Source: Perkinsus chesapeaki ATCC PRA-425
Lineage: Eukaryota; Protista; Perkinsozoa
Length of the DNA stretch: 64,000 nt
Reading direction: 5' to 3'
Assembly (NCBI GenBank): GCA_013115145.1
Contig: JAAPAO010000105.1
Coordinates: forward strand, 12,262 to 76,261
The notes below the pieces were generated by a model, which was not told the origin of the DNA, did no database searches, and saw only the letters and a program-made list of their open reading frames with translations. A program made the position numbers and the translations under genes. Positions 8,669 through 44,739 of the stretch are shown here, one piece after another; the stretch's first letter is position 1; every line of letters starts with the position of its first letter.

Positions 8669-10205
8669 TCAGTAATTCGGAAAGAGCATCCAAGCACCAA
8701 TAACGACCATAGCAATGTATAGGTTGTCGAACTTCCCACCAAAGCCTTCGACAAGCATTGTTGTTAAGGAGGTCTGAGGTAGTCAAAAGGTCGCAGGTTC
8801 GAACCTACCGAACGGCATCTTACCATGAGTCTTGGTATGAACGAGCGCGGTCTGTAAAGAGTAAGAAAAGTAACCACAAACACCGCCAATGAGCCAATAA
8901 CAGTCTTCTTGCCAACCCAAGCCGGATTATACCTGATGAATAACCGTGAAAGTGACTGTCCGTTACACACTATTATGATCTTCATGTGTATACCGCTATA
9001 GGAGATATGTAATTAGCAAGTCTTCTCGAAAAAGGGGCGGGGCTCGCGCGCCCTTCACTTGCGAGTGTTTGGAGAATAATGTCATTTCGCTTGTGATGAC
9101 TAACAGTTAACTATCGACCATAGTAACTCTATTAATAGGGATCCTATTTCTGTCCATTTAGTGCGACAAAAATGCCTGTGTCAAATCATACAGGCTGTGC
9201 TGTGCGAGGACAATGGGGTATGTACACTGTACAAGAGCAAGTGTGGTAGATAGTGCATTACTTGGGCATGTTCCTAGTGGCCCATTTACCGATAACCGCC
9301 CCGCTAGGATCTGCAAAGAATATAGGAGCGAGGACCGCTACGGGAAACTCGAGATAAAACCAAAACCTGAATATAGACGGCAATATTGACGATCATTAGT
9401 AGACATGCGCTCAAGGGGAATACATTATTGCGAAATAAGACAACACATTGAAATGACTTTTGGACCAGAGTGAGGCGAGTGGCTCGCTCGAGGTGAGCGG
9501 TTGAGTAGCAGAGTACGGTAATGTTTCCATTCGAAGATGCGCTTTCCAGTTGGAGACGACCCCACGGTGGTAGAAGGAGATGGCTGTTACTACCCAACTA
9601 TAGTCAGATAAACAGATATGCCAATATCTCCATAATCCCCAAATCTCCATTTAGGAAGGCCAGGCATCAACTGCCAAGTCATTATCAGGCCGACTACTAC
9701 TACAGCATAAACGTATAGTCGACAAATAAGGTACCTAGTACTAGAATGTTGAGGAGTTTGCGGAGAGAGCGGTATTACTGTGGTGGAAGAAACAACATCA
9801 TTAGACCGCTAAGCGAATGGCACATCTTTCTGGCAGCGAAGTCCGAGAAGTGCTTTGTATCGAACTGAAATAAACACAACAGTTGGTAGGCAACAGCTAG
9901 AGGTGTCAGAAAACAATTTATCTATGCAATTTACAGCACCAAGGTGACCTTACTAACAATAAGCCAATGGCTACCCAGTCAAGTGATAAAATTCGAGTGC
10001 AAATTTCACTAGCGGTATTTCGGCATTCTCTCTATTCGGGATGGACGCTTCATCCCGGCTTCTCCATTTAATGGCCAATATCCGTATTCTATAGATTAAT
10101 CCAAGTTCCGCCGTTGATACCGTATAAAAGCCTTCTTACCTGTAAAACTAGAAGGAATAGTCCTTCAGCTATCATAAGCCCCAAGCAGCCTTCTGGTGAT
10201 AACAT
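8669..10205 (-). CDS. Prenol/phytol-kinase-like membrane protein, paralog 3 (longer introns)
   Basis: AARKMCHSLSG, WRFGDYGDIG, FFADPSGAVIG, KKTVIGSLAV, LVEGFGGKFDNLYI; intron positions as in paralogs 1 and 2. Confidence 0.8.
8779..8817 (+). pseudogene. tRNA 3'-half relic antisense inside an intron
   Basis: AAAAGGTC-GCAGG-TTCGAA-CCTAC-CGAACGGCA inside the 50-nt intron 8774-8823. Confidence 0.5.
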
Positions 10206-10747
10206 GTCTCAAGAAAAAGAAGGTAAGATCGAAAACAATTTCAGCGGAGTTACTCCTCAGGGCGCGCGCTTTTTACGTAGAGTTCAACCAAATTAGCAAA
10301 ATCGTGGCAGATGCGTTCCTTTGCAATTGGGTCGTTCTCTTTGACTAAAGCATTACGGAATCGACTATAGTACGTTACCCGTTAATAGGTAAATTCACTG
10401 TAGCATTATGACGGTCATGACGAGCATTATGACCCGTATGATATTGACGTCGTTAATCGGTTACGTGTAAGGTAATACTGTTGTTGTCTAGGGCTATCGA
10501 TTGACCTATTAAATGTCTGACTTCTCATCTATTAGTAAACCCCCGTCCAACCAGCCCTCAAAGCCAGCCGAAGTAACCATCTCACATGCATACTCATTAT
10601 TTACTATTAGGCACAGCTCCGACTAAGGCTAACAGTTGACTCGTTTTTTGAAAGTGGCTCGTTAGCTGATTGGCCTCAACGACTGCCGGCTACCCTAGGA
10701 GAGTAAGACATCGTCATCATTCGTCTGTACTGCATTTCCTATCAGGC

Positions 10748-11430
10748 GGCCTCAGGACCGCAATGCCGCCACTCCCCTCGATCGGGGTAACCGACGCCGT
10801 AGAATTCGCGGGAAGGATCTTGTACTCAAACGACCTAAACCTTTAAAACTACTATCCCATCATGACGAGGAACCAGAGCTGCCTCAACCCGCTGGGTGTA
10901 TGGTTACGACGATAGAAGCTCCAGGAAGGCTGGTTAATGAGGAGAATCTCAACAAGATTGATTGCTCGGATGAACTACTAGACGATACCGCCGTTCACAC
11001 ACCCAGTGAGTGCTGCTCGTAATGTACACATCCTTTTCTTTTGCACTACCTACTCAACGCTGTTTTTGAGCCGTGAAGTTGTTCGGGCTATTCCTTGGAT
11101 ATTTGAGAGTTTATCGATGATTTACTGTGGTTCGACACATCTTGCCCATTTGGCGTCAGTCTTCCTTTCGACTGTGATAAGAACGAGTATGACTCGGCTG
11201 CGCGGATTGAACCAGCGACCTCGTCCTTCTTTGTCGATCGCTCCCCCTCTAGGCTAGTTTTCAGGTACGAGTACCGACTCTCCATTATCGAGCAAGGAAG
11301 GCGCCATCGCTTGCTCGATGCTAGAGTGCCTGCTCTTCGAACTATCGTCATCCTCATCAGCTTCCGAGTGTGGTGATGCGGACGAGGTTCTTCTTGACGG
11401 TTTTATTTCGGATGATGATGATGATGAATA
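10748..11430 (+). CDS. Hypothetical multi-exon protein with acidic C-terminus (partial model)
   Basis: Open exon RPQDRNAATPLDRGNRRRRIRGKDLVLKRP...AVHTP ending at GTGAGT; terminal exon ...GFISDDDDDE*. Confidence 0.35.
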
Positions 11431-11899
11431 ACACAAGTCGATTAATGAAATAGACTTATCTGTGCTGCTTCGAGGGGCTTATATCAGTATTATAGAGATT
11501 ACTACGAGTAGATATCGATTGAATTAGCATCATCATCATTACAGTGGTCGTCTAACGACTTGCCTCTGTTGGCCCTTTACGATTGTGTGTAATAGCCATT
11601 ACCTGAATACAGGTTACCATCAAATTTGCTATAAAACAGCAGCATTGTGCATATCTATCATTTTAATACTTATTGTGTTGTCTAGTATCCTTCACCCGTT
11701 AGAACTCATTCAACTCGCAGGCTTCAACAAAACACCCAAGTGCTGCTTCAACTAATCCTTGCTTTGCAATTTAATATTTGCAAATCGATTTAATAACAGG
11801 GACTTTGCAACTGCCCTACTGCACAGAGGGATTTCTGTATTATTAACATAACAACTTAACGATCAACTTAACACAGAGAAACATAAACGGAAATAGCAC

Positions 11900-12618
11900 A
11901 TGCTCATCATCGTTATCATTTCTTTTGCTTAGTAGACGATCCTTCCTTTTTCTGCTTGGTACTGGCAGTTTCGTATCGGAAATTAGCTCTGGCCCAACGA
12001 CCGTTCTTTCTATCCCAAATCACGCTGAACCTAATTGAAAGAAAGACGCTAATATTCCGACGACTCTTCCGTGGTGTACTTGTAATATCTAACGCAATTA
12101 CAAAATAAGTGTTCCAACCACGTCTACACTGAGGAACATTTGGCAGGAAGCGCCAGTCCCGTGGAGGAAATAGTAGACTGCAATTCTATACAGGAGCTTG
12201 CGCATTTTCCCTCATACATATTAAAATAACATAGTTACTGGTATGATAAATATAAACAGCAGTCCTACATAACCTACTTATATTGTCCATCTACAAATAC
12301 ACCATAAACCCGCCCCCGATCGCCGTATGTCATGAAGTACTCCTCCAACGGTTGACCAGACTTGTACGCGAATTCGATACGATTACCGAAGGCATGATAG
12401 CTGCTCTGTAACCTGACAAAAACACTGGTGACAATGCATAATAATAAAAGACCCGGTGGAGGCAGTAAGTGAAGGCGCCTTGATAACATTTCGATTGAGA
12501 TACACAGGAAGAAAGAGGATCTTTTTCGCTAATGCCCTTACCTTGGCGGCTTTATGTTCTTTCCATCAGACTTCATCCGTGATGCCAGTTTAACTTCTCG
12601 GCCTTTCACTTTAGACAT
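11900..12618 (-). CDS. Hypothetical multi-exon protein
   Basis: MSKVKGREVKLASRMKSDGKNIKPP followed by GTAAG; later exon SYHAFGNRIEFAYKSGQPLEEYFMTYGDRGRVYGVFVDGQY; 3' end uncertain. Confidence 0.35.
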
Positions 12619-12667
12619 ATCGAGTAGACCAGATTTTCCCTCTGAAACTGTTCGTGCTGGTTCACTT

Positions 12668-14360: not shown

Positions 14361-14714
14361 CTGGATAGGAACGATGTTAAGTTAAATTATGAAAACGTTT
14401 TTATCCCAGCAAGAAGCACGGTAGTTGGAAAATAAACTTCATCAGAGCAGGAGTTATTATCGAATTGAGTATCATCGTATTAGACTGTCGAGATTCCGAC
14501 TGTTGTACTACGACATTATAACATTCATCATATGAATGCAACAATGAAATACAATCACTTGGACAGGGAAATGACGATTTTGATCACCAAAGTTTGGTGT
14601 AATCGCAAAGTAAGGCCCATTTCTCTATTTCTCATCTGGGAGTATCGGACCCGAATTCGGACGAAGCTTCGACGAACACAAAATCTCAACGAATCAATCC
14701 TGACGCGGAAATCC

Positions 14715-15984
14715 TTAGTTAGGCAGGTGGTGGCCCTAAAATTCAGAGTTCCAGGGATAGTGTGATTCAGCGACAATACACCCCAACACCGGTGACCACC
14801 CACCTCATCCGTGTATCTAGCATATGCCCTCCGAGTACTGTCACGCTCTCTTCTCCGCTCTCGTGGACTGTTATTTTTACGACGCTCAAATCTAGAAATA
14901 ATTCACTATTAAAGAGCAATGACAGCTGCTCACATGCGTTCCTCATCACTCTCATCATAGTAATCTTCCTCATCTGTATCTGACTGGTACTGCGCCCATT
15001 TATTATTTCCTTGCCGACGTTGAGTTCTTTTGAATCTAAATGGAAGAACAGAGATTAGTGAAGGAAAAGTGGTGCGCCACGACGATGGAAAATTTCATTG
15101 CATTTTTTTAAAGAAAAATTCAAGATTTCTTTATGGAAAATTTCGATGAATCTCCTTAATATTTAGAGAAAAAAACCCGTTTTTTTCCTGGAAAAATCCC
15201 GGAAATTTCTTCAAAAGGTTCAAATTTTTAAAAAATTTCTGTCATGACGCAGCCCTATACCACGCTCGACTTACTTGCTCCAAGCCTTCTCAAACTCCCT
15301 CTCATCGAACGCGAAGTCCTCCCCTTTCGGTCGTCCTGTTGACCACCACCAAGTTGTACCGCCAAACCCACCCGAACCGAAACCACCATTGCCATTAGTC
15401 GAAGAAGTCGAAGACGACGACGAAGACCTGCTGACAATTTCGTGGCGCGCGGTTTTCGCTCGACGGGCTTATTACGTATTGTAGTTCGGCTTTGCCGTCG
15501 ACGCGGCTCCACCGTCTTTCTTCTCTTTATTAATATGTTCGTAGGCTTGTTGTACCTGATCTTGGCAATGACGGATGGAGGAGGCGCAGGAAGAAGCAGT
15601 TCTTGGACAACTTATTCACCTGCTTTGACCAGCACAACAATAACGCGTTTTGTCGATAGACTAAAGTTCTGTACTTCAAGTCTTCAGTCTACTTCAGTAG
15701 CTATTTCCAGGTTTAAAGAACGACGTTAATAAGTTCGACTTGCCGCCCAGCGAACTCACTCTGACAAACTTATCATGATTCCCTCCAGCGTCCGGATGAT
15801 GCTGCTTGACGGCCTTCAAGTACGCCGCTCTGACCTCCTTATCAGAGGAGTGCTGGTGAACTCCTAGTTCCGCATAGCTGTCAAATCGGGGCGCAGCACT
15901 GAAGTGCCTTCGACGCGGAGCTAACTTGTACGGAGAGGCTCTTGGAAAAGGTCGACTTATTTTACAGCAGCCATGAGAAAGCAT
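14715..15984 (-). CDS. DnaJ (J-domain) protein with organelle-targeting-like N-terminus
   Basis: YAELGV...VRAAYLKAVKQHHPDAGGNHDKFVR/VQQAYEHI (HPD motif); G/S-rich linker; 3' end uncertain. Confidence 0.8.
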
Positions 15985-16343
15985 TCGCAAAGTACGAAGA
16001 AAGCTCAGCTACATGAGAAGGCGTAGAAATCCGAAGAAGTAAAGGAAGCTGGCGAGCAGATTGTCAATCCGAAGCTCATTTGAAGGAAAGATTCGAGTGA
16101 AGATTGTGCAACTGTCTCCCTCCTGGCATTGAGCTAACTCTAAGTCGAAGACCATTAACAGGAAGCGTTCGAAACGCTCAACTTCAGATTCCCTTTTTGT
16201 ATAGTCTAGAAATAGCGCTACCAATACAGATACGCGAACTCCGAGCTCGAGACTCGTCCGTGGTCGCGGTAAAATGACCTCTTTGTGATATATACTCATT
16301 AAGCCGCGGAAATAGGAATCAGCAAAAACTGATAGAAAAATCG

Positions 16344-18194: not shown

Positions 18195-21100
18195 TCACCA
18201 CTTCCATTTATCGATTGGTGGAAAGGCATTCTGCTTGGAGAACACGAACTTGTTGTGTTCGTATGACAGATAACCCTGAAATAAGGCGGCATTCATTCGA
18301 TTTCAACACAGACAGACGTGGACAAGAGTTTGGTAAGTGGGTTTGCTAACATCCTTGCGAAGTCTCATATCGGGATGAACAAGATAATAGTATTGTAATC
18401 CTCAATGACAGGAATGAGGGCACTTTACGATTATGAAGGGGTTCATGCACTTCCGAGCTAAACGCGAGCGAGGCAAGGTTAATGTTGGAATCTTTGCTGC
18501 ATCCAAAAAAACATACTTCTTTCAACTGAGGTACTTCAAGTTACCCATACGCTGCCGGGCGGGATGAGTATGGCGAATCCTTTGATTCGTAAACAATCCC
18601 ACTGGGACTGTCCCAGCTCCACATAAGCGTCGGTGAGGCCCTCTGATGTCTACAGTGTACTATCATTCTTGAAGCCACATAATCCCGGCTATATACTTGT
18701 GAACTATTTAACGTACAAGATAAAAGCGTGCTATTCACAAGGCAAACTATTTCAGGTGAAGAAGGGAATGACTATAATTTGAAATAACAGTGTCTTCCTA
18801 CAGCGCTCCTCCCACAGACAGCATAGACAATATACAACGGAAATTGTAACTTACTATCATCCATGCGGCGGCTTATTAGTAGTAAGTGTCAATACAATGC
18901 AATTATTTACAATGATATTATCTTATGTCATATTCGCTTGGAAGCACAAGTCCATATAGAGTATAATATATAGACCCAAATGAGCGGTCCTTTCGAATGG
19001 TATAAGTACCGGGTCCTAGCTCGTTCGCAATAAGAAGTTACGTGGGTGGGCCCTAGCTAAATGCACACCCTGTTTGAGGAGGATATTCAATCGACTTATT
19101 ACCGATGACTTCTTATTCCCTTACCTTGATCGCCTGTATATATATTAGCCCAGCTAGTGAGCATTGCACCTCGTCACTATCTGGACAGTGTACTTGATGC
19201 TCCTCACTCTCAACACTCATCGGTGAGCTACTAGCAATACTCACACTAGAAGACTCGACAATCTCAGGGGGCTTAGATGACGCAACTTGCCAGGCTGAAA
19301 GAGGCATGTCTCTCGGCCGTCAATCCATGAGTTCGTTGCGATGAGCCGTCGAGTAGTTCGCATTCTGCGGACTACATAAAATCGAAGACGCTTCAATTTT
19401 AGAAGTATCGATGCAAAACAAATCAACGTACTGATTGGAGCGTGAAGCAGGGGCGCTTAATCGACATTTATAGTACGAAGGCCGGCCCTCATGGTGCATT
19501 TCAGCACTAAGCAGTAATTAGGAATCAACGTACACCAAGAACATATAGAGAACATCTACATTTGTATCATCAGTATATAGGATTTATGCAAGATTTACGT
19601 TTATGACAAAATGGAGTTTTCATTCGACTGGTAAGTTAGTAGACTTCAGTTTAAGCAACTCAATGAAATTATCAGCAGCGATCCTATAGATAATCCATCT
19701 CCGCGTTGTTGATATTTCGTGATGAAGTATGTATCTTTGCTTCTCCCAGCTCACCAGTATCAAAATAATCCAGGTCCATTTTGTATCCACATGATGCAGG
19801 ATCAACCGTCAAGTACACTCGCTTTGCCAGGTTTCTGTATAACACCAACTAACAGAAAGAACATCGTCCTCCTAGCTCAGTTGGTTATAATGCTATTTCA
19901 ATAAGCAACAGACCCTAGTTCGAACACCGCCTACAGACTCACCAGCAACTTCTCCATCACCATATAGGTGCCGGCCTTCACATACTCATCGGTGTTGTGC
20001 TCCAAACAAATCTGATATCTGAAATAGCATCCACAGTACGAGCAGAACGAAGTTATTCTGTCCTTCATGAGAGACGGGCAGAGAAAGGATATACATACGA
20101 CTTGCGAGGACACCAAATAAATAATAGATATCATGGAGCAAAGATAGCTCGTTTCAAACCGTCTTTTTCGGGCAGTCCCAAATTCTCACGGAATGGAGCG
20201 AGGGGGTGCAGGCTGTGCTTAAGGGTTAAGATCTCAGTTTCTGTCGAATGCGTACAACGGAACGCCCTATGATGCTGCTAAATATATCAGTGGCTTCATA
20301 CAAATGTGGAATGTCCGCAATGATGCTACGCGTTTGAGGCACAGAGTTGCGAGATATTAGATATAAAACACCTTTCATTTGCTAAACGATTCACATCCAT
20401 CGAAAACCGCAAGTACAAAGCATGATCTCAATCCAGGATAGTCGCAAGTTCGAATCCCAGCAAAGGCGTTTTTACTCTCTAATATTTCCAACTCGAACAG
20501 CATGCAATATTCGTCCGTACTCATTCTCCAAACCATACTCTCTAAGCATACTCCTCTTCGGCAAAAAACCGCGCGCCAATAAATTACACGGTATCAAATA
20601 CTGCGCAATTCGTCTCCTGTTATGATTGTGTTCTTCACAGCAATTATCAAGCGCCCAGTTTAATCGCTCCGCAGCCTCCCCGAATCTCTGCTCCGTCACA
20701 AGATATTTCCCCCAATGGAAATAAAGAGTAACAGCAACAGACTTGGGGAGCGCCGTCGGAGTGAAATACGCCTTATACTGCTGCTCTACAGCGGCAAGAA
20801 TCGGGCCACAAAGTGCAACTTGGTCGAGCCTTTGGAACAATCGAAGCAGCTCGCTCGATAACCAACATGCTCCCGTCATTTTCCTCCGCCGCTCTTTCAA
20901 GAGCTTCGGGAATAGTTCTCGAGCCACCTCGACGAGCTTCATGCACCATCGGTCCTGGTCACTGGCGTTGTCCATGTAGATAGCAAGGTGACGAGTCTGG
21001 GATGTTATCTCGATAAAGGGAGGGACAAACCACGCAAAGGAGTCGCCCGAGGTGAAGTAGACATCATGGAGCTCCTCAGACGTCTGAAAAAACCATTGGC

Positions 21101-22398
21101 TTTAATGATTGGAGTACAGCGGTTGCCAGTGACGCTTAGAAAGACAGGTCAGGAATATTATCTTCGTTTCAGATCTTAGGTGACCCGATTTCGGATGATG
21201 TAGAAACCGCCGCAAGATACTCAATATTAATCAGGCACACGTTGCATGTTCTTCTATATTCTCTTAAAGTATACACGTACTAGAATTACACAGCTCAACA
21301 GAATGCGCCGCACGGTGAAGAGTACTGCTAAAATGATAACGAGCTATTAATACCACATTTCCACCAAATCATGCCCTCACCACATGCCTTACCTCCTCTA
21401 CACTAGAAAGCAGTTCGCTATTGACATATAGTTCCGTATAGGCTCGCTCAGCTGTTACCAAATGTTCTAGGGCAAGTGCCTGACAGAAGACATATACAAA
21501 TAGTATACGATTAACCATCGAGAAGCATCTGATCCATTGAGTGGCCAGCCTAAGAGATTCTGATATCCCTCCTCCCTAGACCTTCCTCGCAGCCAGCTTC
21601 CCCTAATTCATTTCAGCGACAGTTTTGATGAAGCGATGCCTCAATTTCAGCACCTTAGTCACGAAACAGTCCCCAGGGAGTACAAGGTTAACCACTCACG
21701 CTTGTTTCTCGTTAAGCTCCATCACAAGTGTTGATTTTCTGCTCAAAAAGTTTACGGGGCCTCACCGCAGAAGACGAGTTTCACCATGCCGAAGGTCTAT
21801 ATGTCATTCGCTGCCATATTTTTGTCAGGTGCCAAGAAGTAAAGCTTCATGCTTCTCGCATTACCCAATCATGATTCCTTCGAGCCTTTAAATGCAATAT
21901 GTAGGCCTGTACGAACTTTGACCACATTCCCATCTGTGCACCTTGCTTGATAAACGTTAAGTTGACCACGCCTTGGATACCAGAGTCAGCACGGTTCAGA
22001 CAATCGTTAAAACCTGACAAAGTAGCCCTCATCTCTACCATAGTTTGCCCGTCTAATTCCAATACAAGCAAATGTCTTCGGTTATTATCAACCTCGGTCT
22101 GGAAATTACACATACGCGGTCGCCTACATGAGTTAGGGGGAAAATTAAAATGTCGGACATAGTGTAAGTGTACTATTCTTGTTCCTTTACTCCGCTTGAT
22201 TGCCGAACCACAGCAGCAGTGCAATTCGATTCAAGATCGACACAAAGCGGCTGTCTCCCTGTGCGTACATAGTCTCTCATGTGCCTTTGCTAAATGCTTT
22301 CTTATAGCAGGACCATCCTCGAGTTTAACCAATGAAACTAGTTCTTCACACCAGTCGTAAAGGTCATCATTAACTTCCTTCGACTTAGTTGGTGCCAT
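18195..22398 (-). CDS. PCID2: PCI-domain protein 2 (Thp1/CSN12-like, TREX-2 subunit)
   Basis: VTLYFHWGKYLV...EAAERLNWAL..C...NRRRIAQYLIPCNLL.RGFLP; GTYMVMEKLL/LVLYRNL; C-terminus GYLSYEHNKFVFSKQNAFP. Confidence 0.8.
19866..19938 (+). pseudogene. Decayed tRNA-Ile(AAT)-like relic, antisense in a PCID2 intron
   Basis: TAGCTCAGTTGGTTA A-box, TCAATAA loop and GTTCGAAC B-box at canonical spacing over 73 nt; stems mostly broken. Confidence 0.6.
20396..20473 (+). pseudogene. Decayed tRNA relic with T5 tail, antisense in a PCID2 intron
   Basis: GTCGCAAGTTCGAATCCCAG-CAAAGGC-G-TTTTT; 5' half unrecognisable. Confidence 0.45.
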
Positions 22399-24174
22399 AG
22401 AACAAATAAGCTGCACATGAACTTGATAAAACGAAATCCCGCACAATTCAATGGCTTTTTGGACCCTTCCGCGATGACATCTCACGGCTCGACTCGGGAA
22501 GAACGGAAGCGTTCTCCTCAGACATTGACAATAAAAAACAAGTGTTCAACAGAGCAGCGCGGTGAAGTGGGAATTTCCTGACCTCATTTTAAATAGCTAT
22601 TGCCCAGAAATAAACCGACATTCTCCAGATGGGTGTTTGAAAGATGTTGAAACGCAGGTCTGCCAGATACGTCACAATGAAGAACGAAGACTTGGCCTGC
22701 TTCGCCGCTAATCTCAATTATTGTTTTCACGCTCCATTAATACCCCGCCAATCTCGCAAATTGCACCCTCTGATGATGAGAGTTGCCGAGCTAATGACTG
22801 AGAGGTCTGCATGGTGATAGGGACTACTATTTCGTTTGCGACTTCATCAGATTGTCCATCAGTGTCATTTGTACGACGAACAGCTCTTGCTCCAGACGAA
22901 CAGAGGCAAACTGCTACAGTTGACACCGATGCCGACGTCACCTCTTTCATACGGAAGAAATAGCTCATCTTGGAAAATGCGAAAATCTATTTCATGGTTG
23001 CTACGAGCGTTTGCTTTCATATCCTGAAGAGTCCAACATCGTAAATGTTAAGTTCATGATCGGAAGGTCATACTTTCAACGTCTACTGGGGCATTTTCCT
23101 GTCTTCAGGGGCTCAGCATCTTCATGCTACTGAACACCGCATTCGGCCTTATGATAAGGCCCTGTAGAATAGATTTTCTTCGTTGGAAAGTCGATCCCTC
23201 GCTTTGCTCGGCCTAGGCTCTTTGAAATCCCCAAAGCTTCCGACTGTCATCATAAGGGTCTTACCGAGCAGCTCCCAAACGATGCCTCGAAGCCTTTTAG
23301 TGGTAAAAAGGGATCAAAAGTTGAAATAAGAGTTGCCGACAACTTAGCTAGCTGATGCTAAAAAAGTCCCTCATGAAGGCGGCAACGCTCTCCCCTCCTC
23401 CCTATCCTCAATTACAACCTTCTTCCTACTCATGGGGTGTCAATAAGCCAGCCAGCGTAGAAAGCAAGACTGAGCTGAAGGTATTACGGGGGCACGAACA
23501 GACCGTAAAACTAATTTTCCACGAAAATATCACTTTTCTTGAGGGCACCGAGGGCATCGCTGTCTACATTGCTGAATATTATTCACAATCGTTCCTTGCG
23601 TGTAAGGAATTCGCACGGTGATATAAAGCAAATTTCGCCCGCCTCTAGGGCACGAACCGTTTCGTATTCGAACTTGTACTTTTAGTGTGTATTATTACGT
23701 TTTAAGCTTGTCGCCCCCCAAATTTCAGAACAAAACTCCTAAATATGGCTAAAAAATGAAATTTCGCGATTTGCCTAAAGAAATTGCGCGGTCCCTAGTA
23801 AGGCTATTTTCAACAGACACTGCTAAACAGCTGCGCATTTAGTGACATTTTCAGAGGAAATTCAGTGATTCGTGTCACTGTGACACGGTCAGGCCGCCCG
23901 ACCCTGGCGATGCCAATCATTGTGTCAACAAACTTAGATAACTGTTGGCCTAGGAGTTATCCAAGACTTATCCTAAGAGTCTTAGGCTATTGGTAGAACG
24001 CAAGATACTCATGACTGCCGACGATGACGGCCCATACAGATATAATATCTGAGATATTGCGGTAACAATTAACAACTTGGCTTTTCTCCCTGGTGGTGCT
24101 TCTGTCAGCTATCATAGCTGAGCTATAGGTCTAGGAGATACCGGAAAGACAGCAAGATATGGAGATTTGGGCTA

Positions 24175-25948
24175 CAGTACGCGTCATCTACAACGCGCGC
24201 TTCTTGACAACTCGGTCATTCACTAAGTACAACGAGTTTTCGATTAATTCCTTCACTGTATACCTTAGAAATACCCCTAGTTATGTAATCCAAGTTGCCG
24301 AGTCCAAACTCTCGAAATACTTGTTATGCATATTTTCGACCCTCTGCGCGCATTTTCATGCACCGTGCGCGCGGTATCACCGGCATTCAAGCACCCAAGC
24401 GATGCAACCCAACATAAGTACATCTGTTATACTGCAACATCATACGAATTATCCATGCCAGTCTACTCTAGCCATCCCATTGACGAGTTCTTGCCCCCCT
24501 CGCAGAGCTCGAATGGTACCACTGGTGGTAGTGCATCCGATGCGGAGAAAGACATAAGCTATTATCATAAGTCCACGGCCAAACCCTCCAAACGACGTAG
24601 CTCTGCTCGCCTTAAGCCCAGTACACCTACTGAGAAAGACCTTGAGCATGTCCACAACTACAATACTCGTCTCAAGCCCAATACCCCTGCACAAAAGCGC
24701 GCCTTTAACCGCAAGGACAAACCTAAACCGAAGGTGAAGAGACAGAGGTCTGTGTTGATGCCCAGGAAGAATTCTCGCCCACCTAGCAAGGCCGAGCAGT
24801 GCTTGCGCTTACAGAAGAAACAGGTGCGTGAGCAGGGGTTCGAGACCCTCTGGGAGACCTTGAAAGCTAGTAACCCTCTCGAGAGCATGTCGCTCATCAT
24901 GAAGAAGCGTCTAGCTGTCCACATTACTCTGACCCAGCTGTACGGTTATTCTGGCTGGGCATGCCGTAAAGACATAGAGGAGTTTGTGGCTGATATGCTC
25001 GAAGTAAGCCCACCCTCTGTCGCCAAGTGGTGTCGTGAATTTGAGCTCAACTTATCCCTAGAAGAAGACCGTCGTGGGAAGCACCCCAAGGTCAGAAGCC
25101 CAATATTTGACACGGAGTTCCAGCCCTTCCGGGACAGGCTTCGGGACCAGGTTCGTGAGAAGTCCATCGGGAAAGACGGGAACCCGAATATGACACTGCC
25201 TCTAAAAAGCAGGATGCGCTTGTGGAAATGCTTTCGGAGTGCGACGACTTTGCCAGTCAACAAACTCTTCTTCAAGAACAGGCTCTAGAGCGTGGAGATC
25301 GGGTTATCTACGGAGTAAAATTCCATCCAGAATTGGCTCCCATAGAAGCTGCCTACCGGTCCATCGCTAAAGCAATGAGGGTATCGAACTCCGCCAAATC
25401 TACTGCAGGATTCAAAGAAAGGGTTGAAGGCAACCAGCAGCCACCGGATCTGACGTTAGAATTGATACGGAAACACTTTCGCTCAGCAAGGGAGTATCTG
25501 CGGTACTACGCGGAAGGCTTCACTATGCAGGAGATCGAGGAGTTGCGAAAATCCCGAAGAAAGCACCGTGGTCCAGCTCCAGTACTCGGCATAGGACAAG
25601 GAGCTGCAAAGGGTGGCACTTACGATCGCCATAGACTGAATTAAACTATAATGGATTTTCTGTTATTTCTACTATTTCTTTCTCGTGATATTAGAAGCGT
25701 CTTCCTCATCACCTGTCTTGTGTTTTCTGTCATTCCTGCTGGTTAATGGACCGCGCACGGTGCATGAAAATGCGCGCAGAGGGTCGAAAATATGCATAAC
25801 AAGTATTTCGAGAGTTTGGACTCGGCAACTTGGATTACATAACTAGGGGTATTTCTAAGGTATACAGTGAAGGAATTAATCGAAAACTCGTTGTACTTAG
25901 TGAATGACCGAGTTGTCAAGAAGCGCGCGTTCTAGATGACGCGTACTG
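24175..25948 (+). mobile_element. IS630/Tc1/mariner-superfamily DNA transposon, internally deleted (1774 bp)
   Basis: 197-bp TIRs (24175-24371 and 25752-25948, one mismatch), 5'-CAGT end, TA duplicated at 24173-24174 and 25949-25950. Confidence 0.93.
24455..25644 (+). pseudogene. Truncated, frameshifted Tc1-like transposase
   Basis: HTH-like SPPSVAKWCREFE and RRGKHPK, then a frame change near 25195 into DFASQQTLLQE...VKFHPELAPIE (the terminal E motif); no segment with the first two catalytic Asp is visible. Confidence 0.8.
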
Positions 25949-27825
25949 TAACAACTCAATTAGCGCTCGTCCCTAACACGCGACATACCCCTCAAAGATA
26001 GACCCACAACCGTAAACGACAAGCAGTCAAACGGGAATGTTAAAACACTATTAGGAAATACCGACCTCATCATCTCTTTGCACCGCTCGGTAGTAGCGAG
26101 CCGCTACTCAAGACTACTGGTCCAGATCGGACAAGTTCTTGAGACAGTTTAAATCCTCCTTAAGCTTCTTCTTGAACTGAACCTCCCTTAGCTTCCTTCG
26201 CTGGCGACCACTAGTTGGCCTGGATTTATTGGTGCCATGGAAATATAGCACGAGCTGCCTGAAGTTCCGCATTCGCCGAAACAAGGAAAAAAATCCTTGG
26301 ATCAGGATGACAGCAAGTGCGCCAATCAAATGTCGTGAATGAAGAGTGAGTAGTGGTCTACTACTTACTACTACTGGAGCTCCGTACCGATAAACGCTTC
26401 TACCCAGATGGCTCAACCTCACCATAAGCCCTGCAGCGTAGTTGATAAGGTCAGGTGAAAGCGGAGCTAGTACAACTCGAGTCTGCCGTGCTGTACCCCG
26501 TGAACCGACAAGAAGCCTTACTCACGCCTCGTGGTCGACAAGCTGGAGACATGTCGTACTCATGACGACTCGTAGATGAGTTACTCATCATGTATCATCA
26601 GCATTGTACTCATCATGAGTACAATACTTCCCACAGAATACTAGCCTGTAGCTTCGGCCCCCCGTTCAGTGGGGCCCGCTGGCAAGGAGGAGGAAAGTCG
26701 GAGGTCCATCACAGGAGGCAAATGAAGAGGAACGAAGTAATGAGGAGGCATCACCGAAGGGGAGATGCCATCTCCGAGATGGAGGCTGCCCTCGATGGGG
26801 TAACTCTGTCGGCTTACGCAGCAGAGTTCATACCGAGACGGGCCGATAAAGCGAGTTATGATAACTTTTGTTATCATTATCTTGGCCCCCATAGAGGCTA
26901 ACCGACGATCTATCACCAATGGTATCGATACGAAAAGGCCAACTGCAGGAGGGCGATGGTATTAGCTTATCCCCCTCCATCAGCCGACCTTTAAGGACAT
27001 TCATCAACTCGTCTTCGATGAGGTAATCAAAGCACCGAAGTGTATCAACCTCCTACCTACCCCAAAACTTTCTGGCCATAAGTCCCGTATAAAATGGTAA
27101 GGGAACCCAGCTTACAAGTCCCAATCTGCCGGGAAAGCCGAACAGATATTCTCACACATTATGGGCCACACTGTAATCCCATGCAGAAAAGATGTTACCC
27201 GTCCGGTACTTACTAGCTCGCCAGGTGAACCTACTCACAGGGATCACTAATGCTAACGTATGAAGCGACTACATAAGCATCATCAGTAAGTTAGAACAAA
27301 ATCCCGTTATTATTTTTCACCCACAGGAGCCTATAGTTACTTAAATAAAGAGACTATGCGTGGGCGGGGCATCTTTCAATTACGGTAGCATCATATAAAC
27401 AAAGCAAAGGTTAATGTTGTTGAATTATGTGTAAGATTACCATTGAACTATTATCAGCCATACATGCACTGAAGGAAACCTTGAAGGAACTATCGCTACA
27501 ACTAACGGCTTGGCTCGTTCAACGACCGAAGTTGATATCGTTATGGCGACACCATGTCACATAAGACAGCAACTCACCACTCTTAAGCTCAAGGAGTAAG
27601 CCCACAGCAATGGCACCAGTCGGTACCAGACCGACATTAAATGATAACCTCACAGTGCGGGATATCGTGAAAGACCTGCTCACCGCTTCCCCCGAGGCCC
27701 TTCCCTCTTCAACCACGTTAAACTTATGGTGAATACTGAACACAATTGTTATCACGTCGTACAGCATCATCAACATTCTAACATGAACATAAACATCATC
27801 ATCATAAACAACATCATCACCATGT

Positions 27826-28776
27826 TCATTTCCGATCTAACTTCATCAGTTTCTTAACCTTCTCCCTCTCCTCCTCCTCCATTTTTCTCCTAACTTCTGC
27901 CCACACTTCCTCCCTAGTAGTCTCTCGGAGGCTCAAGGCTTTCAAAACGGATTCAATATCGCCCTGGTGCTTCGAGTAAAACTCACCCACCCAAAGGATT
28001 CCCTTTGTAAAACCCTCTGGCGGATTACTCGCGATGAACTTGAACAGAGCCATGCATCAGAATTCACTAGAATTTTTCTTCATTTCCTGCAACACCATCT
28101 TTGGAACATGTCCACCGAAATGATAAAATGGCCAAACACGATCCCATGGACTCCTCGATGGCCGGTACGCCCCCTTCCTCGTAGCTAAGTTTCCACTGTA
28201 GAGACATGTATCCAGCGGCGTACCTAATAATGAGGACTGAAGGGTGCCCGGATATCCTAGACTCACTCTGTTTTAAAGAACACAGCACTATCCTCCACCC
28301 CTTTCAGAAACCCGCTTGCGTGGTTCAGCATCTCATGGTCTTCTACCCGTACATGGACTTCTAATTCCAACCCTTGCCCTTTGAACAAACATTTTCCATC
28401 ACCCTTTTTGCTAACCCTCCCTGGTACCTGAGTCGATGCCAGCTCAATCTTCTGCAAAGCATATCACACTTCCCAGAAACTCGCCTCAGCATCATCATCT
28501 ATCTTCAAGTTTGCAACTGGTGCCACTCTGGAGAACTTCTGATGATGGCCCTCCTTCACCTTCTTAGATCCGCTAGATAAGTTAGCTACTTCCTTGGTGA
28601 TTCCCTTAAGTAATGTCTGATGATTACATTACCTTCTAAATGTACGAAGCTCGGCTTACCTTGATTTCCGTAACATCTGTCTCCAGTGCATCGAGCCGCC
28701 TATCAACGCTACCAACAGCTTCTTGCAGCAGGATAAAGCAGCGCAGAATAAGGACGGCTACCTTAAGGATGGCCAT
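27826..28776 (-). CDS. Secreted coiled-coil hypothetical protein, possibly a pseudogene
   Basis: MAILKVAVLILRCFILLQEAVG signal, VDRRLDALETDVTEIK/TLLKGITKEV; downstream frames interrupted by TGA at 28464-28466 and 28054-28056. Confidence 0.45.
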
Positions 28777-29138
28777 TCAGCTTTATGTATCTAACTCTCA
28801 ACTGCCGGCACGGTGCTACAAGCAATGTTACAAGAGCTGGGGTTCTCTCCCACCTTCACTTGGAAAATTTTTCTGCCCAAATACTGATGGTTTCGCCCGT
28901 ATTGGAAATCGATTATTTTGGAACATCACCGTGCTCGATTTCCTTTGCACCTCTCGATCGCCGATCTATCGCATCTCTCGGCATGATAAGATCACAACGA
29001 GCAGGTATGTGATGTTTACTCCCCCTCCCCATCCCGGCGTCCCTCCCCGTTATATAAACTAAAGCCCATCAAAGCCACGCAGTAACGAAACCTGTTGCTC
29101 GTGGTCGTCTTTGTCTCTGTTGGCAGCAATAATAGTAT

Positions 29139-32228
<3,090 letters not shown>

Positions 32229-32370: not shown

Positions 32371-34007
<1,637 letters not shown>

Positions 34008-38274: not shown

Positions 38275-38459
38275 CCATATTCCTTAGCCCTTCAAGTGCC
38301 ACTAAATAGCCAGTTCTCTGCCGCTGTTGAGGGAAGGTCAGATCCTACCCTCCCTATGCTCCTATCTTCATTACACTATATAATATCAGTTCAACTGGTA
38401 TACTATCGAATCAGCGACGACGTGCGAAAATTAACAAACATCGCCATGGCAAGTAAGCG

Positions 38460-41400
38460 TTATGCCTCACCAGCCCCACTGCCATGCAGTCCCTCAACTG
38501 TTGATCCTCCTCCTGCTGCTGGACCTCCTTCCAGCTGAGATCGGAGCCTCTGTGATTGGTCTTGTTGTTGCTGATACCTTAATGCATCGTTTCTACCCTC
38601 CCCAGTGTATTCCTACCTAATTTTAGCTGTAGCCATATCTTGTTTATATTGTCCACCAATAGCGAATGGTGCCACCCACTTCACACCTCTACCGTGAGGG
38701 TATTCAACCTGATGACACTTAATATGATACCCAAAACGTTATTCGTTTTTCAGCCTAATATACCAGTTCTAACTCAACTACTAAAAATTTCTACAAATCC
38801 CCATCTCTCGCGCTTTCGGTAAGACTGCCCAAGACCTTTCCAATGATTCCTCTTTCCTTTCCAAGGTTAGTGTTGAGCGATTACACTACTATCAATCATA
38901 TCTATCGATGATACATTTTCCCATCGTTTATGCTATTAACCACCAACCACTCATCTACCGTTTCGCCCAACTATTTCCAAGGCAGGCACGATTCAGACGT
39001 ACAAATTAATACACACCACTACTCATTGACATTCAAACCCCACCACCTAAGATGTTCGCGGACATGAACTACTATTATCCTTTTCATCGTCGTTTTATTA
39101 AAATTTACCAATATCTCGTATAGTCCAAGGTACACCGGTTTTGCAGTAGTACGACCATAGAAAGCATTTGACAATATCCAGGGTAGATGCGGCAACGGCA
39201 CGGCAAGTTTGTCTCCCGATATTACCTGGTACCGCTCCTTCCCATTTTCTATTTTATAGTCTAAGATCCGTACGGTAGAGGAGGACATAGGAACGAGGAT
39301 GGAGGCACAAGATAACTGATAGCTAAGATGGTATACTGCAACACAACACATATGATCAATAGAAAATACTCAAACTACTCCATGTTACCAGACACGTCAT
39401 CATATAGCCTAGTGGTAGAATTCATGCTTTGTAATCGCTCCACCCAGGTTCAATTCCCAAGTATAACAAGGTGAATCATATTAACTTCACAGCCTTCCTC
39501 AACCTCATCCATCACAGCCTCGAGTAGCCATCGAAGCACCAGAAACTTATAACCCTCAATCCAAACCAACCAGAAGAAGCAACAATACAAGTCGAGACCG
39601 TCCATGCTGACAGCCTCAAGACCCGAGGGTGCGCAGCCGGAAGAATTAAGATATCTTAGGTTAAAATAAAGATACTAGGAGACATCTCTAGAGGCTTATA
39701 AAAGAATCAGAAGGGACAGACTGCACAAAGCAAATATTTAACAGCAACCTTGTATCTGATATAGAAAAGTAGTAGCGAAGGCATTGGTGAAGATTACAAC
39801 TACGAACTTGCTCTTACACGGTCATTCAATAGTCCAATGCGTAATGGTTACGAATACCTCTCATTATATATATTAATATATTGATACTCATCCCTGTTAT
39901 GCGAACCATGGTGATGGCTGTCCTTTACGCACCAATTCGGGTTCAACATTTCTTAGCATGTGCGTCAACTATTCTGCAATTCATGCAATATAACAATTGA
40001 AAGAGCAGGCTCACTAAAACTCCTCGCAACCACAAAATTGGGCTAGAGAGCTCTAGGCAGCATCCAACCAACAAGAGATACGTCTCCCTATATATTATGC
40101 AGTATAAAAGACACATGAAATGCGGTCATCGTCCTCCTCCTCCTGTCCCGACGCTGCCCTACATCTGGGACTTCCTACTACTGCGCTCCACCGCCTCCAC
40201 TACTGCTACCACCAAAGAGTAGTGATATAACCTAAGACACTTTCAATGGAAAGGATGTCATTAACAAACTTACCGTAGTAACAATCATACAAAACATAAC
40301 CGTACTTGTCATCGAAAGGCTTGTGATCGAACTAAAGAGCGGTATGAGCAACTCCGACCCACTCCGACTCACTGGATGAAGACCGTCCACCACAGCAAAG
40401 GTGACGTATCGATACACGTCACAGAGGTATTTACCCATGTCATGCCTGATGATCGATCAACATATCCCGAAAGATAAACCCTACCAGCACATAACCAGCA
40501 AAATGAAACCGCCAACAGCAGTACTTCCAGAACAAACGCCCCTCTGAAAACGAGATAAAAAGGCGGAGCGAAGCGGACAAAATACTACTTGAAACTTTCC
40601 TCTTGGGAATAAGAATATACCAGAAATGTCGCTGGCCAGCCCAGCAAGATTCCAACTAGGCCGAAAGTTGAGCCAGGATACGCACGGCTACTACTACCTA
40701 TGGCCCAGAGGAGCAGCGGGGCGTCACAGGGAACTCCAAAGCCTCTGATGGCTGCTATGAGCAATGATCCATCGAACACCGTTAGCCCTGCCATTACACT
40801 CGGCAACCACCTATGGGGGAGAGGAGGTAGGATAGTAAGAACGTGGATATATAAGAAAAGTCAACGATAATACAACTACACAATAGGCTGCTATTACTTC
40901 GATAGTTGAACGATCAGAAGTATCTTAAAAGATACCTTATCTTCAAGCTAAGATACCTTTGATATTCAGTGTATTAAAGAGATGCTATAAATGCAATGAT
41001 GAAGCCACCAGAGCTAATAAATAGCCACTTGTGGATAGAATGCAAGCGATTAATTCCGCCTTCCTAACTACATGACGAAAACTGTGAACCTACTACCTGA
41101 CCTGTAGAAACCACCTATTGGGTTCATTCAAGGACATATGCTAAAATGCTGGACCAAGAAATGAAGCACTAGTGGTTCTATTAACTGACTCAGCTATACT
41201 AACCTCCAAATGGCACCAACGATTATGAAGGATAAGGTATAGGGATCGTTCAATAAACCGATTTTGAAATTCAGAATCGATTCCAGAACTGCTTTTTACA
41301 AGTGAAACGCGATGCTGGAATCGATTCTGAATCACAGAATTGGTTTAATGAACAATGGGATATATTTATAACTAATATAATCTAATAATCCATATAAAAT

Positions 41401-42465
41401 ATAAATTATATATCACTGAGCCTGGATAAATGTCGCCAAGTAGTAACCCTATATTACTCATAGAACTTCCTGCATCTCCCAGATAGCCTTCTCCCTATCC
41501 CTCCTTCCTCATCCTCATCCATCGGTTCCACAGTCTTCGCTATGTTAACTGCCCCACCACCATCAGAGCTGCTGGACGACGAGGATGATCTATGGGGACC
41601 TGAAAAGGATCCGAAAGTGCATCGTCTCGAGTTTGCGTCCTATCCAGTTTGGATACCATAATCAGCTTTGGTATATCCAGATGATCACCTACACGAAATT
41701 GCGATGGAAGGAATTTTCGAGAGCATTTTCCGTCGGTTCTTGCGCACACTGGAGAAGTATATTTTTCCTTTGCTGATCCGAGTTAGTCCAATCCTGGCCT
41801 CAATATAGCTGAAAATGCTATTGCAGGCAGGAGAGGGACACACACCAGTGGTGGTAGACACAGTCGACTCAAGAAGGGCATTTTACACGTGTGGAGAATT
41901 GAAATAGAAATAGGAAAATTAATGGATAAGAGAAGTTTGACTCGAACCACTGATCTGAGGGTACAAAAATAATACTATGAATTATTAAGTCTTAGTAAAT
42001 TGGAACTTAGGTACAAAATAGCAAGTTCTAGAATCGACAAGTTTACCTTCACCGAAGAAATCCGCAACGGTTTCACTTCGTTGACTCGTCTGAAAGATAC
42101 AAAATAGGTCAACTTCCGGTCTGGTGTATATTACTGATATCATGGCGGCTCCCACGAGTGGTGCCGCTGAAGGCATCATGCCTAGTTGGATAGGAACCGA
42201 TACAGGTGGCAACAGAGGATAGCTCGCCAAGACCCCAGGCTGACATATGAAGTATCTTACCAGCTTCAAGCCAAGATATCTTACATCAACCTTCCAAAAG
42301 ATATCCCATGCTTGCTGGAGGAGAACTATCCCGTCCTCCAGCCCAAGCATAAATTATATACCAACTACTTGGGCTGCCAACAAGAAGTCAAAAAGTGTTA
42401 CAGAAAAAGCGCGCGCCCGTCTAATCGATTCTAAAATAAGTACCGTGAGTGTGCCTTTGAACATT
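38460..42465 (-). CDS. Multi-exon, probably multi-pass membrane hypothetical protein (could be more than one gene)
   Basis: Series of minus-strand open exons with hydrophobic stretches (e.g. MMPSAAPLVGAAMISVIY, GAFVLEVLLLAVSFCWLCA); terminal YQQQQDQSQRLRSQLEG...GAGEA*. Confidence 0.4.
39398..39468 (+). pseudogene. Decayed tRNA-Thr(TGT)-like relic, antisense intronic
   Basis: TAGCCTAGTGGTAGAAT, TTTGTAA loop and CCAGGTTCAATTCCCA at canonical spacing over 71 nt. Confidence 0.55.
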
Positions 42466-42553
42466 ACACTGGTAATATGATTCTTATATGATACTTGTAA
42501 TGATATGAATGACCTCATTCGACCTTTATAAAGATCTTTTGACAGTTTTATAA

Positions 42554-44739
42554 ATGGTAGGGTATCATGAATACACTGCTATTCTTCTAGGAGGTACTGG
42601 TAAGCTGGGCAGCCACCTTGTCCGAAGCTTCCTCCTATCCCCTTTATGTGAGCATATCTTAGCTACCCGCTTTGTGGTGATATATCTACTACAGGCAATC
42701 GACTAGTATGTATTGGTAGGCCAGGACAAGCAGATAGACTGGAGAAGTTTATTACGGATAAAATGGGGGTAGCTGGTGCTAAGTAATCTTCATACCGAAC
42801 TTTTCTCGATTTCTCCTAGATTGTGGGGGTAACCTCTAGAGCAGTAATATCTGAATCTATTCGTTGGCCTTGCTGAGGCTGTGACAAGGGTATCGGACTA
42901 GTCGGAGAGTTGATTGTCTATCAACAACAGATGGACAACTGAGGATCGCATTTGACGCGCTAAAATCATTTACTTGTTAAAGCCTCTAAGGACGCCGATA
43001 GTTCAGTTGCTTCTGATTAGGTCCAAGCTGCAAGCCATAGATATCTCAGAAGACTTATCGGACTTAGCGGGAGCGATGAAGCAATATGGTGCAGGGGCCG
43101 AGCTGGCAGTGTCCGCACTTGGAGCGAGAGGGGGAAGGTAGTAGCTTTGGTGTAATGGTAGAATCGTCGATTTTCCATCCCGACGGCGTCAGTTCGATTC
43201 CCAGAAGGGGCTTGTCAGATACAATTTAGCGACTCCAGCTGACCTACTTCGTCTAGATGTAACCGAAAACCTTCGATTCGCGGAAACTGCCGCCCAGGAA
43301 GTCGGTAAGGCTCGAGGGTGTCGCCAGTAGAACAAGACTGCTGTTATCATCATCAGGTGCATCGCACATTACATTGATGAGCCATATAGCAGCTGATCAT
43401 AGCAAATGGGGGAAGGGGACTGAAGGGAAAGGAATGCCGAAGGGGTTCAAGGAGGCTAAGGGACTCTTGGAGTAAGCATTGTTCAGTGGGCGGTGAGACG
43501 TTTACTTGTAGTCGACTGGCTTCACTGTCCTGTTCACATTTAGTAAGTAGGTATTACTCTCGCGAGGGATAAGTACGATATCAACCCTTTAGGACTTGCT
43601 TATTATAGAAAACGGGCGGTATAAAAATCCTCTGGTCTTAGTTACGTAGTCAGTCAATAGGTTCATGAATCAACCTTGTATGAATCTTACATATCATACC
43701 GTCTTTAGATATCGCATAGAGAAGTCAGATGTGCTTAAGTCACTGGGTACCAGAGTTTCGATATTTAAGCCATCACTTATAATTGGGGAGCAGTCTGATC
43801 AATGTGGTAGGTCCAAAGGGCATCTCAGGTGACCGTCGAACGATTTCCGAAGCCCCTTATCAGTCTTGAAGACTTATCGTTGAATTACTAGTGCCGAATT
43901 CCTCCCGGTTCCTTCGTCTCTTTGTCGGAGGCTTTGAGGCGACAGCTCGTCGCCCATGAGCAACTTGTCCTGTGATAATAGTAATGCTTGCTTCCCTCGG
44001 TGCCTTATGTTGTAGCACCAGTAGTGGGAGCTCGTACAAAGCGTGGCACTGGTTGTAGGAAATGCCTTCCCGTGTGACACAGCTGCACGATTGGCTATAT
44101 CGGTATATTACCTAGTTTTCAGAACTGCCCGGCCTGGCAAGTGTCCCTATAAAGGAGAAGTTGGTTAATATAATGTATCCAATTCAAGCACAGTTTATGC
44201 TGGCGCAGTATAGAGAGATAAGTGCTGAGCATTTGGCCTTGGCGGTAATAATCTTGGCGGGAAAGGGTCTCGTAAGGAGATAATAGATTATAATTATATT
44301 GTTGAGGAATATGGACGGTTCGGGGCAAATAAGAGTGGCCGCCGCGCTGTCGCTAGTCCATCCTAGGGCCGAGAGCGTACTATAGTTCTTGGATCAAACT
44401 TTGTTATAATTCTCGCGCGCCTCGAAATGTGTAGAGTATTCTATTTTGCTGAGAGAGAGCGGGTATCTTGGGGCAGTTATCACGGTAATAGGGTTCGAAA
44501 CTGATAAACTAAATAGGAATGGATAGATTATTCCTTCGTATAGCAAGTGGTCCGGCTTGGACTTCGGTATTGGTAGTATTGTTACTTTGGGACATTCTAG
44601 ATGTCACTGGCGGGGATCGAACCTGCGCGTTCAGATACGTATTAATCATGAAATGTGTGTTCCCCCGGAAGGTGTATTGATGGAGCCTCTGGGATATGAG
44701 GAATGTATGAAATTAGTCGGCAAAGATGAAGCCATTTAA
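42554..44739 (+). CDS. TIP30/HTATIP2-like atypical SDR, NAD(P)-binding protein
   Basis: TAILLGGTGKLGSHLV (GxxGxxG), AVSALGARG, DLLRLDVTENLRFAETAA, VSIFKPSLIIGE, YREISAEHLALA. Confidence 0.7.
43141..43212 (+). pseudogene. Decayed tRNA-Gly(TCC)-like relic filling an 81-nt intron
   Basis: TGGTGTAATGGTAGAAT, GTCGA-TTTTCCAT-CCCGAC, GTTCGATTCCCAG and AAGGGGC at canonical spacing over 72 nt. Confidence 0.62.
44602..44640 (-). pseudogene. tRNA 3'-half relic antisense in a probable intron
   Basis: Reverse complement GCAGG-TTCGATC-CCCGC-CAGTGAC-A. Confidence 0.45.

Follow-up and report, generated by a model that had tools for sequence, protein, structure and literature searches.

tRNA-derived elements in short introns of Perkinsus chesapeaki: one live tRNA-Pro gene, old relics and retention of their B-boxes

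We analyzed a 64,000-nucleotide (nt) stretch of Perkinsus chesapeaki DNA (contig JAAPAO010000105.1, positions 12262-76261; hereafter the window), in which eight tRNA-derived elements, one live tRNA gene, four relics of tRNA length and three tRNA 3' tails, lie in introns, with one exception that stands upstream of the start codon of a protein-coding gene. Comparison of this sample, eight elements from one window, with orthologous loci of Perkinsus olseni and Perkinsus marinus establishes tRNA ancestry, great age of most relics, decay in place and constraint on the B-box, the docking motif of TFIIIC. The explanation that we favor, and regard as fairly likely, is that the elements descend from tRNA genes of introns or a 5' leader, and that their B-boxes were then kept by purifying selection, probably as working DNA sites. 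An earlier note on this DNA, made from its letters alone, had reported intronic tRNA sequences close to splice donors, and had proposed either that tRNA genes or their complementary DNAs (cDNAs) seed new introns or that intronic tRNA genes are born and die at a high rate.

The elements, with the intron of the live gene, are listed below in window positions; fractions of 17 count A-box and B-box positions, and bits, unless RF00005 is named, refer to a T-arm position weight matrix (PWM).

30679-30750, minus strand: intact tRNA-Pro(CGG), called by ARAGORN and by RF00005 (49.5 bits), in host-gene orientation
30657-30800, minus strand: Rpt6 intron housing tRNA-Pro, from tblastn and reading of the sequence
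43141-43212, plus strand: tRNA-length relic ('Gly-like' in the earlier note), 16/17, 14.5 bits, in host orientation
39398-39468, plus strand: tRNA-length relic ('Thr-like' in the earlier note), 17/17, antisense to the zf-MIZ gene
19866-19938, plus strand: tRNA-length relic ('Ile-like' in the earlier note), 15/17, antisense
11190-11263, minus strand: tRNA-length relic missing from the earlier note (here 11203), 16/17 at 11203-11256, 24 bits
20396-20465, plus strand: tRNA 3' tail (T arm, acceptor strand, TTTTT), 21.3 bits, antisense
8788-8823, plus strand: tRNA 3' tail (8779 in the earlier note and below), 23.5 bits, antisense
44603-44631, minus strand: tRNA 3' tail (T arm and acceptor strand; 44602 in the earlier note and below), exact GGTTCGATCCC, 16.9 bits

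All eight elements carry, beyond chance expectation, either an A-box and a B-box or a T arm, acceptor strand and oligo-T with the order and spacing of a tRNA. At a threshold of at least 16/17, A-box and B-box at tRNA spacing occurred at four sites, namely tRNA-Pro, 39405-39457 (17/17), 43148-43201 (16/17) and 11203-11256 (minus strand); local dinucleotide shuffles had 0.05, and 1 at most. At least 15/17 was reached by six sites against 1.75 expected. The three tRNA-length relics of the earlier note are in this way far above shuffles, the one at 19866 (19873-19927, 15/17) being borderline taken alone. A T-arm matrix built solely from the copies of other species found six window sites of at least 14 bits (8788, 11200, 20439, 30687, 43183 and 44610) against 0.61 in shuffles, and this recovery indicates that the tails at 8779, 20396 and 44602 are real. 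Across species, 14 of the 16 relic copies match the B-box consensus GGTTCGANNCC at 8 or 9 of 9 positions. Two further weak relics of the earlier note failed both tests, had no orthologous counterpart and were rejected: 15690-15730 (plus strand; its 15698) agrees with the B-box at 6/9 positions and is missing in the orthologous intron of P. olseni, and 33377-33440 (plus strand), in the Arf-like GTPase intron 33323-33480, gives no PWM match and has nothing in common with orthologous introns.

The relic elements are tRNA-derived, from different parent tRNAs. In an all-against-all comparison with 80-nt flanks they had only 10-14 nt around the B-box in common, and because no flanks are common they do not form one family of short interspersed nuclear elements (SINEs), as the earlier note had argued; the common tRNA-unrelated body and tail in multiple copies that mark a tRNA-derived SINE were not found. 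No near-identical copies were seen among the relics, nor the lineage-specific introns that mark introners; target-site duplications were not obvious by eye at 19866, where no systematic search was made. The Ile, Thr and Gly labels of the earlier note could not be confirmed, and 'Gly' is uncertain because the 43141 relic does not have the same anticodon loop in every species. None of the seven relics folds as a tRNA. A whole-window search with RF00005 found tRNA-Pro and no relic at E<=10, and searches of 100 nt around the 19866, 39398 and 43141 relics gave nothing. RF00005 also misses the dead tRNA-Pro of P. marinus, which is plainly homologous to the live gene; the model is therefore blind to such relics, and the absent matches are not evidence against tRNA ancestry.

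How such relics begin can be seen at tRNA-Pro, as the earlier note had it an intact gene and, among the window elements, alone in reaching the RF00005 gathering score together with an ARAGORN call. It lies wholly inside an intron of only 144 nt in Rpt6, as a nested intronic tRNA gene. The P. olseni orthologue is intact in the orthologous Rpt6 intron (L004:12719-12790, 46.2 bits). There both P. marinus haplotypes carry a decayed tRNA-Pro with roughly ten substitutions, which break the D stem, anticodon stem, acceptor stem and B-box. A tRNA gene resident in an intron can die in place, which bears out the 'graveyard' of the earlier note, and this live-to-dead series within one orthologous intron indicates that relics start as resident genes. 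The intron lies in phase 0 between GSRM and VREL; a haptophyte Rpt6 gene (L010) has an intron at exactly the same position, and tRNA-Pro therefore moved into an old intron (the bird Rpt6 intron is three codons away). Across about 210 kb of Perkinsus DNA we saw no intact tRNA gene that had newly arrived. Besides tRNA-Pro, the one intact tRNA gene is a tRNA-Ser(GCT) with an oligo-T terminator at L008:19958-20041, in a P. marinus region without annotated gene; it was not found in the haplotype locus L007.

The species comparison used two P. olseni loci (L004 and L006) and two pairs of P. marinus loci (L003 with L005, L007 with L008), each pair being two haplotypes that are 91-93% identical at four-fold sites. 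All are collinear with window 8.7-49.5 kb by tblastx anchors; a further P. olseni locus, L002, found with the 251-aa gene, was dropped because its synteny ends at that gene. Four-fold sites are 32-38% identical between P. chesapeaki and either other species (random expectation 26%) and 44-48% identical between P. olseni and P. marinus. Neutral sites between Perkinsus species are nearly saturated, and ordinary orthologous introns cannot be aligned between species. Scans of introns by longest common substring and gapped alignment were too blunt, unrelated 45-nt introns already giving 0.58 identity.

Against this background five of the seven relics (8779, 11203, 20396, 39398 and 43141) have kept their B-box, at the orthologous place, in one or both of the other species, P. 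olseni and P. marinus. Those at 43141, 11203 and 20396 are present in both species; the tail at 8779 was compared with P. marinus and is kept in the orthologous intron there; and the relic at 39398 has a P. olseni B-box in the corresponding region L004:5279-5300, the P. marinus B-box having decayed. Of the tail at 44602, P. olseni has a degenerate copy and P. marinus none, and the 19866 relic is found only in P. chesapeaki, the other two species having there a 46-48-nt intron without it. Most relics are thus very old, and the high birth-and-death rate of the earlier note does not fit their retention across species so nearly saturated at neutral sites. A B-box matching at least 8 of 9 positions in the same orientation was found in 8 of the 13 orthologue comparisons (about 0.5 expected by chance, an estimate). 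B-box positions are identical to P. chesapeaki at 61/72 (85%), a figure inflated by registering the sequences on the TTC.A core, as compared with 51/104 (49%) at neighboring T-arm positions (Fisher p = 1e-6) and 36% at four-fold sites. The copies of the 11203 relic have decayed differently, with GGTTCAA invariant, and the 43141 relic keeps both A-box and B-box in three species.

By these comparisons the relic B-box is constrained by selection, and three observations suggest what is selected. By reading of the sequences, the T stems have not been preserved (1-4 pairs out of 5, without a compensatory pattern); relic elements stand in both orientations relative to the host gene; and the 20396 tail is truncated in the same way in three species, so that the truncation predates the species split and conservation of the tail cannot be due to tRNA function. 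Together they argue for selection on a DNA motif, rather than on a tRNA or an RNA hairpin.

The relics also lie in a characteristic place. About 70 introns were mapped from cross-species exon anchors with a common GT..AG or from RNA contigs, and seven of them (10%) hold an element; three of these seven, where anchors read through, were added by hand, as were three RNA-confirmed introns. The RNA contigs, from two tiny runs, confirm splicing of 43304-43355, 43472-43708 and 43806-44121 in the plus-strand HTATIP2-like gene, and their coverage stops short of 43138-43218. The earlier note had placed all its elements in introns. This holds for seven, and the exception is 39398-39468, upstream of the zf-MIZ ATG (39288) and of an acceptor conserved in three species (39316), so that it would be in a 5' leader intron or in a stretch removed by spliced-leader trans-splicing. 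The preference for introns over intergenic DNA that the earlier note implied is not significant in the window, since about two thirds of the non-coding DNA is intronic by the contig annotation, and seven of eight elements in introns is then no significant excess. In P. marinus a B-box/T-arm-like element stands between two annotated genes in both haplotypes (L007:5963-5984, L008:5592-5613), an intergenic example of the same relic kind.

Within introns the elements lie at an edge. The earlier note gave a tRNA end 3-7 nt from the GT, which applies to 8779, 19866, 20396 and 43141, while those at 11203 and 44602 abut the acceptor instead. In the antisense cases 8779, 19866 and 20396 7-8 nt separate the tRNA 3' end from the donor G, and in sense cases (the tRNA-Pro genes of two species, and 43141 as it stands in P. 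olseni) the T-run lies within the polypyrimidine tract before the acceptor. The 8788-8823 tail fills the 50-nt intron 8774-8823, where reverse-complementing the tRNA trailer gives the donor GTAAGA; the 20396 tail stands at the 5' end of intron 20019-20465, whose donor, GTAAAAA, reads as the terminator TTTTTAC reverse-complemented, and the orthologous introns, 46 nt long in P. marinus and 57 nt in P. olseni, are almost wholly tail. The 19866 relic, in intron 19849-19942 of the 484-aa gene, has its 3' end 7 nt from the donor GTGAGT. The relic at 11190-11263 is antisense in intron 11006-11264 of a plus-strand gene with its 5' end abutting the acceptor, and the antisense 44602 tail lies directly before the acceptor of intron 44245-44634 in the HTATIP2-like gene. 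In that NAD-binding gene, too, the 43141 relic fills the 81-nt intron 43138-43218, which begins with two in-frame stop codons and whose excision joins the upstream open reading frame to the RNA-confirmed frame. In introns of 447, 390 and 259 nt the elements are all at most 8 nt from a splice site (joint chance about 2e-4, an estimate), and orthologues of two of these three long introns are tiny in other species.

We propose the following course of events. tRNA genes would have lived inside introns, in one case in a 5' leader, of protein-coding genes; tRNA-Pro is the one still alive, and the tRNA fold is gone from the other seven elements. With a typical intron length of about 45-50 nt in this genome, a tRNA gene residing in an intron would lie flush against the splice signals. 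In host orientation its oligo-T terminator would double as the polypyrimidine tract before the acceptor, and in the opposite orientation the reverse complement of the terminator would supply an A-rich donor, GTAAAA. An ancestral tiny intron filled by the relic may later have grown on one side, leaving the relic at the edge, and from this the 'hugging' of splice sites would follow. After the death of the tRNA most of the gene would have decayed, the B-box being kept since the split of the three species and, in one relic, the A-box as well. The retained B-boxes are most likely docking sites for TFIIIC, whose binding and effect we infer, and the relics would still work as DNA sites comparable to extra-TFIIIC (ETC) sites.

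Several observations weigh against this explanation. Without the four TTC.A core positions, B-box identity is 29/40. The B-box of the dead P. marinus tRNA-Pro is already lost (GGCTCGA), and the protection of relics is therefore not universal. The 43141 intron has an overall identity of 0.64-0.65, only about one standard deviation above a set of 36 short orthologous introns that includes the 43141 P. marinus pair itself (0.58 +/- 0.07; gapped alignment). The 19866 relic and some P. olseni and P. marinus elements are lineage-specific, and some turnover therefore exists. Two further P. marinus sense elements are not at a splice site, which makes the edge position a tendency.

A rival explanation is neutral turnover, in which tRNA genes are frequently copied into introns, decay fast and leave short-lived, functionless debris. 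The decay in place of the P. marinus tRNA-Pro and the restriction of the 19866 relic to P. chesapeaki agree with it, as do the elements at P. olseni L004:17931 and P. marinus L007:708, which have no counterpart in the window, and the proteasome beta-7 intron, where a tail retained in one P. marinus haplotype is deleted from the other. A source is also at hand, since in P. marinus five tRNA types are reported to exist in more than 500 near-identical copies (PMC3706591). However, debris of this kind should hardly keep its B-box in five of seven cases, with a sixth degenerate, while neutral sites are almost randomized, nor keep B-box positions far better than their neighbors; in addition, frequent copying would have to be reconciled with the lack of any new intact tRNA gene in about 210 kb, the L008 tRNA-Ser lying outside annotated genes. 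We consider neutral turnover unlikely as the whole explanation. To about the same degree we doubt that tRNA genes, or cDNAs of the 3' half of pre-tRNAs, entered exons and became introns in the manner of introners, with the reverse-complemented terminator as donor. Several tiny introns that are nearly all tRNA tail, although from unrelated genes, do agree in layout (donor hexamer, 1 nt, 7-nt acceptor strand, T arm, pyrimidines, CAG), as in 8774-8823, the P. marinus and P. olseni introns orthologous to that of 20396, and 43138-43218, and the tails end in oligo-T of gene type instead of CCA. Yet all seven element-bearing introns are present in each other species compared, and the position of the tRNA-Pro intron is common to a haptophyte. 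The intron at 19866 exists without the relic in two species, as does the 8779 intron in paralogues of its host gene. Neither common flanks nor near-identical copies were found, and since the GT lies outside the RNA polymerase III (Pol III) transcript, a cDNA could not have brought the donor. These comparisons speak against the seeding of new introns that the earlier note had proposed.

A motif acting in the host pre-mRNA, as a splicing enhancer, hairpin or branch-site context instead of a DNA site, would suit elements beside the splice sites of very short introns, where most bases could matter, and the reverse-complemented T arm is still able to form a hairpin. Against such a role stand the two orientations relative to the host, the unmaintained T-stem pairing without compensatory pattern, the 447-nt P. 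chesapeaki intron that keeps its element about 400 nt from the acceptor, and the finding that introns, the relics apart, show no enrichment of the motif; we regard it as very unlikely. Least probable of all is chance resemblance to tRNA motifs, a reading that draws on the structure-based searches: ARAGORN at relaxed thresholds gave no excess over shuffles, RF00005 was blank around three relics of the earlier note, and the B-box alone (8 against 3.3 expected) and T-arm hairpins (5 against 2.4) exceed expectation little, these two tests, like the relaxed ARAGORN search, having little or no power. But RF00005 misses a certain dead tRNA too, the same elements recur at orthologous places, and both the test of A-box with B-box and the cross-species matrix reject chance. 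It is refuted for the eight elements, and it stands for 15698 and 33377. Descent from resident tRNA genes with subsequent retention of the B-box is the explanation that we carry forward.

What the retained sites might do is a more tentative matter. It is possible, though we would not put it higher, that dispersed putative TFIIIC sites in about one tenth of mapped introns act on chromatin organization or on host transcription or splicing, and that 43138-43218 may be a Pol III unit for a small RNA other than a tRNA. If so, a sizeable share of the short introns in a parasite of commercial shellfish would carry a constrained Pol III promoter element, and tRNA gene turnover, intron make-up and TFIIIC biology would be linked. 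To this the window contributes a series of live and dead tRNA genes, a host intron at an old position and an account of edge position in which terminators serve as splice signals.

Of known systems, the closest are the ETC sites of yeasts and mammals, which like the relics have an isolated B-box without a working tRNA gene and are conserved between species, here beyond the neutral level on sequences registered at the motif core; in contrast, the Perkinsus sites stand in short spliceosomal introns, derive visibly from dead tRNA genes and are known from sequence alone. The live tRNA-Pro in its Rpt6 intron is an ordinary case of the intron-nested tRNA genes of nematodes, flies and vertebrates, except that its host intron is 144 nt long, its terminator overlaps splice signals and relics persist under apparent constraint after death. 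tRNA-derived SINEs likewise have a tRNA-like head that keeps A-box and B-box while the cloverleaf decays, but the relics have no common body, tail or copy family; their parent tRNAs differ, and they occupy orthologous places in three species. In introners (Micromonas, Aureococcus, dinoflagellates and Amoebophrya; PMC7789003) a whole intron can likewise be one element with its own splice sites; introners, however, form many near-identical, lineage-specific copies with end repeats, whereas the Perkinsus elements are old and dissimilar and their introns are common to the species. The amplified tRNA families of P. marinus, targets of Dada transposons (Kojima and Jurka 2013, PMC3706591), show unusually many tRNA genes in the same genus and are a plausible source of intron-resident genes; that report covers intact multicopy genes and the inserting transposons, and not intronic relics or B-box conservation. 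Most Perkinsus introns are reported to be under 100 bp (PMC3101222). In agreement with the earlier note, our literature search brought up no perkinsid study of intron content derived from tRNAs or of B-boxes conserved in introns.

Genes and introns were placed from the contig annotation, cross-species exon anchors and a few RNA contigs. An open reading frame of the window matches a P. chesapeaki protein at 100%. The annotation was taken from locus L001, identical to window 14455-36725, and its listing covers window 14.4-36.7 kb, with the following genes.

to 17225, minus strand: RING/DnaJ gene
18195-22398, minus strand: 484-aa gene
24455-26725, plus strand: 251-aa gene
27519-28776, minus strand: 322-aa gene
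29139-32228, minus strand: Rpt6 (26S protease regulatory subunit 8)
32897-34007, minus strand: Arf-like GTPase
from 34384, minus strand: zf-MIZ gene

Gene order is rearranged between Perkinsus species: the syntenic P. olseni locus L004 lacks window 22400-29100, which has the 251-aa (plus strand) and 322-aa (minus strand) genes, and in P. marinus L007 and L008 window 15-22.4 kb adjoins window 40.2-47 kb. Two gene models are probably annotation errors. The longest P. olseni model at L004:10001-13972 fuses the Arf-like GTPase with Rpt6 (524 aa), and the P. chesapeaki zf-MIZ model (34384 to about 39700) has 837 aa against 548-672 aa in its orthologues, probably extending upstream of the conserved start codon. 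On the minus strand, 3992-4810, 5064-5920 and 8678-10202 are three tandem paralogues of one gene, and their exons match one and the same P. marinus gene (L003:19834-21337) at 52-89%; only the third has the tRNA tail in their common intron.

Some short introns have other strings in common between species. The intron 46542-46604 contains a non-tRNA string, GCATGCGTGC, common to both other species, and 45221-45260 and 40544-40588 have non-tRNA strings of 18 and 11 nt, respectively, common across species; the three may be other conserved intronic elements, and 45221-45260 may be a miscalled intron. A match of 44736-44801 to a P. marinus intron proved to be a trinucleotide repeat and was discarded. 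At 41254-41348 there is a long near-perfect hairpin with a weak, sub-threshold Rfam match to a plant microRNA family, which may be an inverted-repeat element. Finally, P. marinus has a dispersed repeat of 70-100 nt, found at L008:19414-19510 and at four places in L007, with 76-83% identity between copies, and two of its copies flank the proteasome beta-7 gene.

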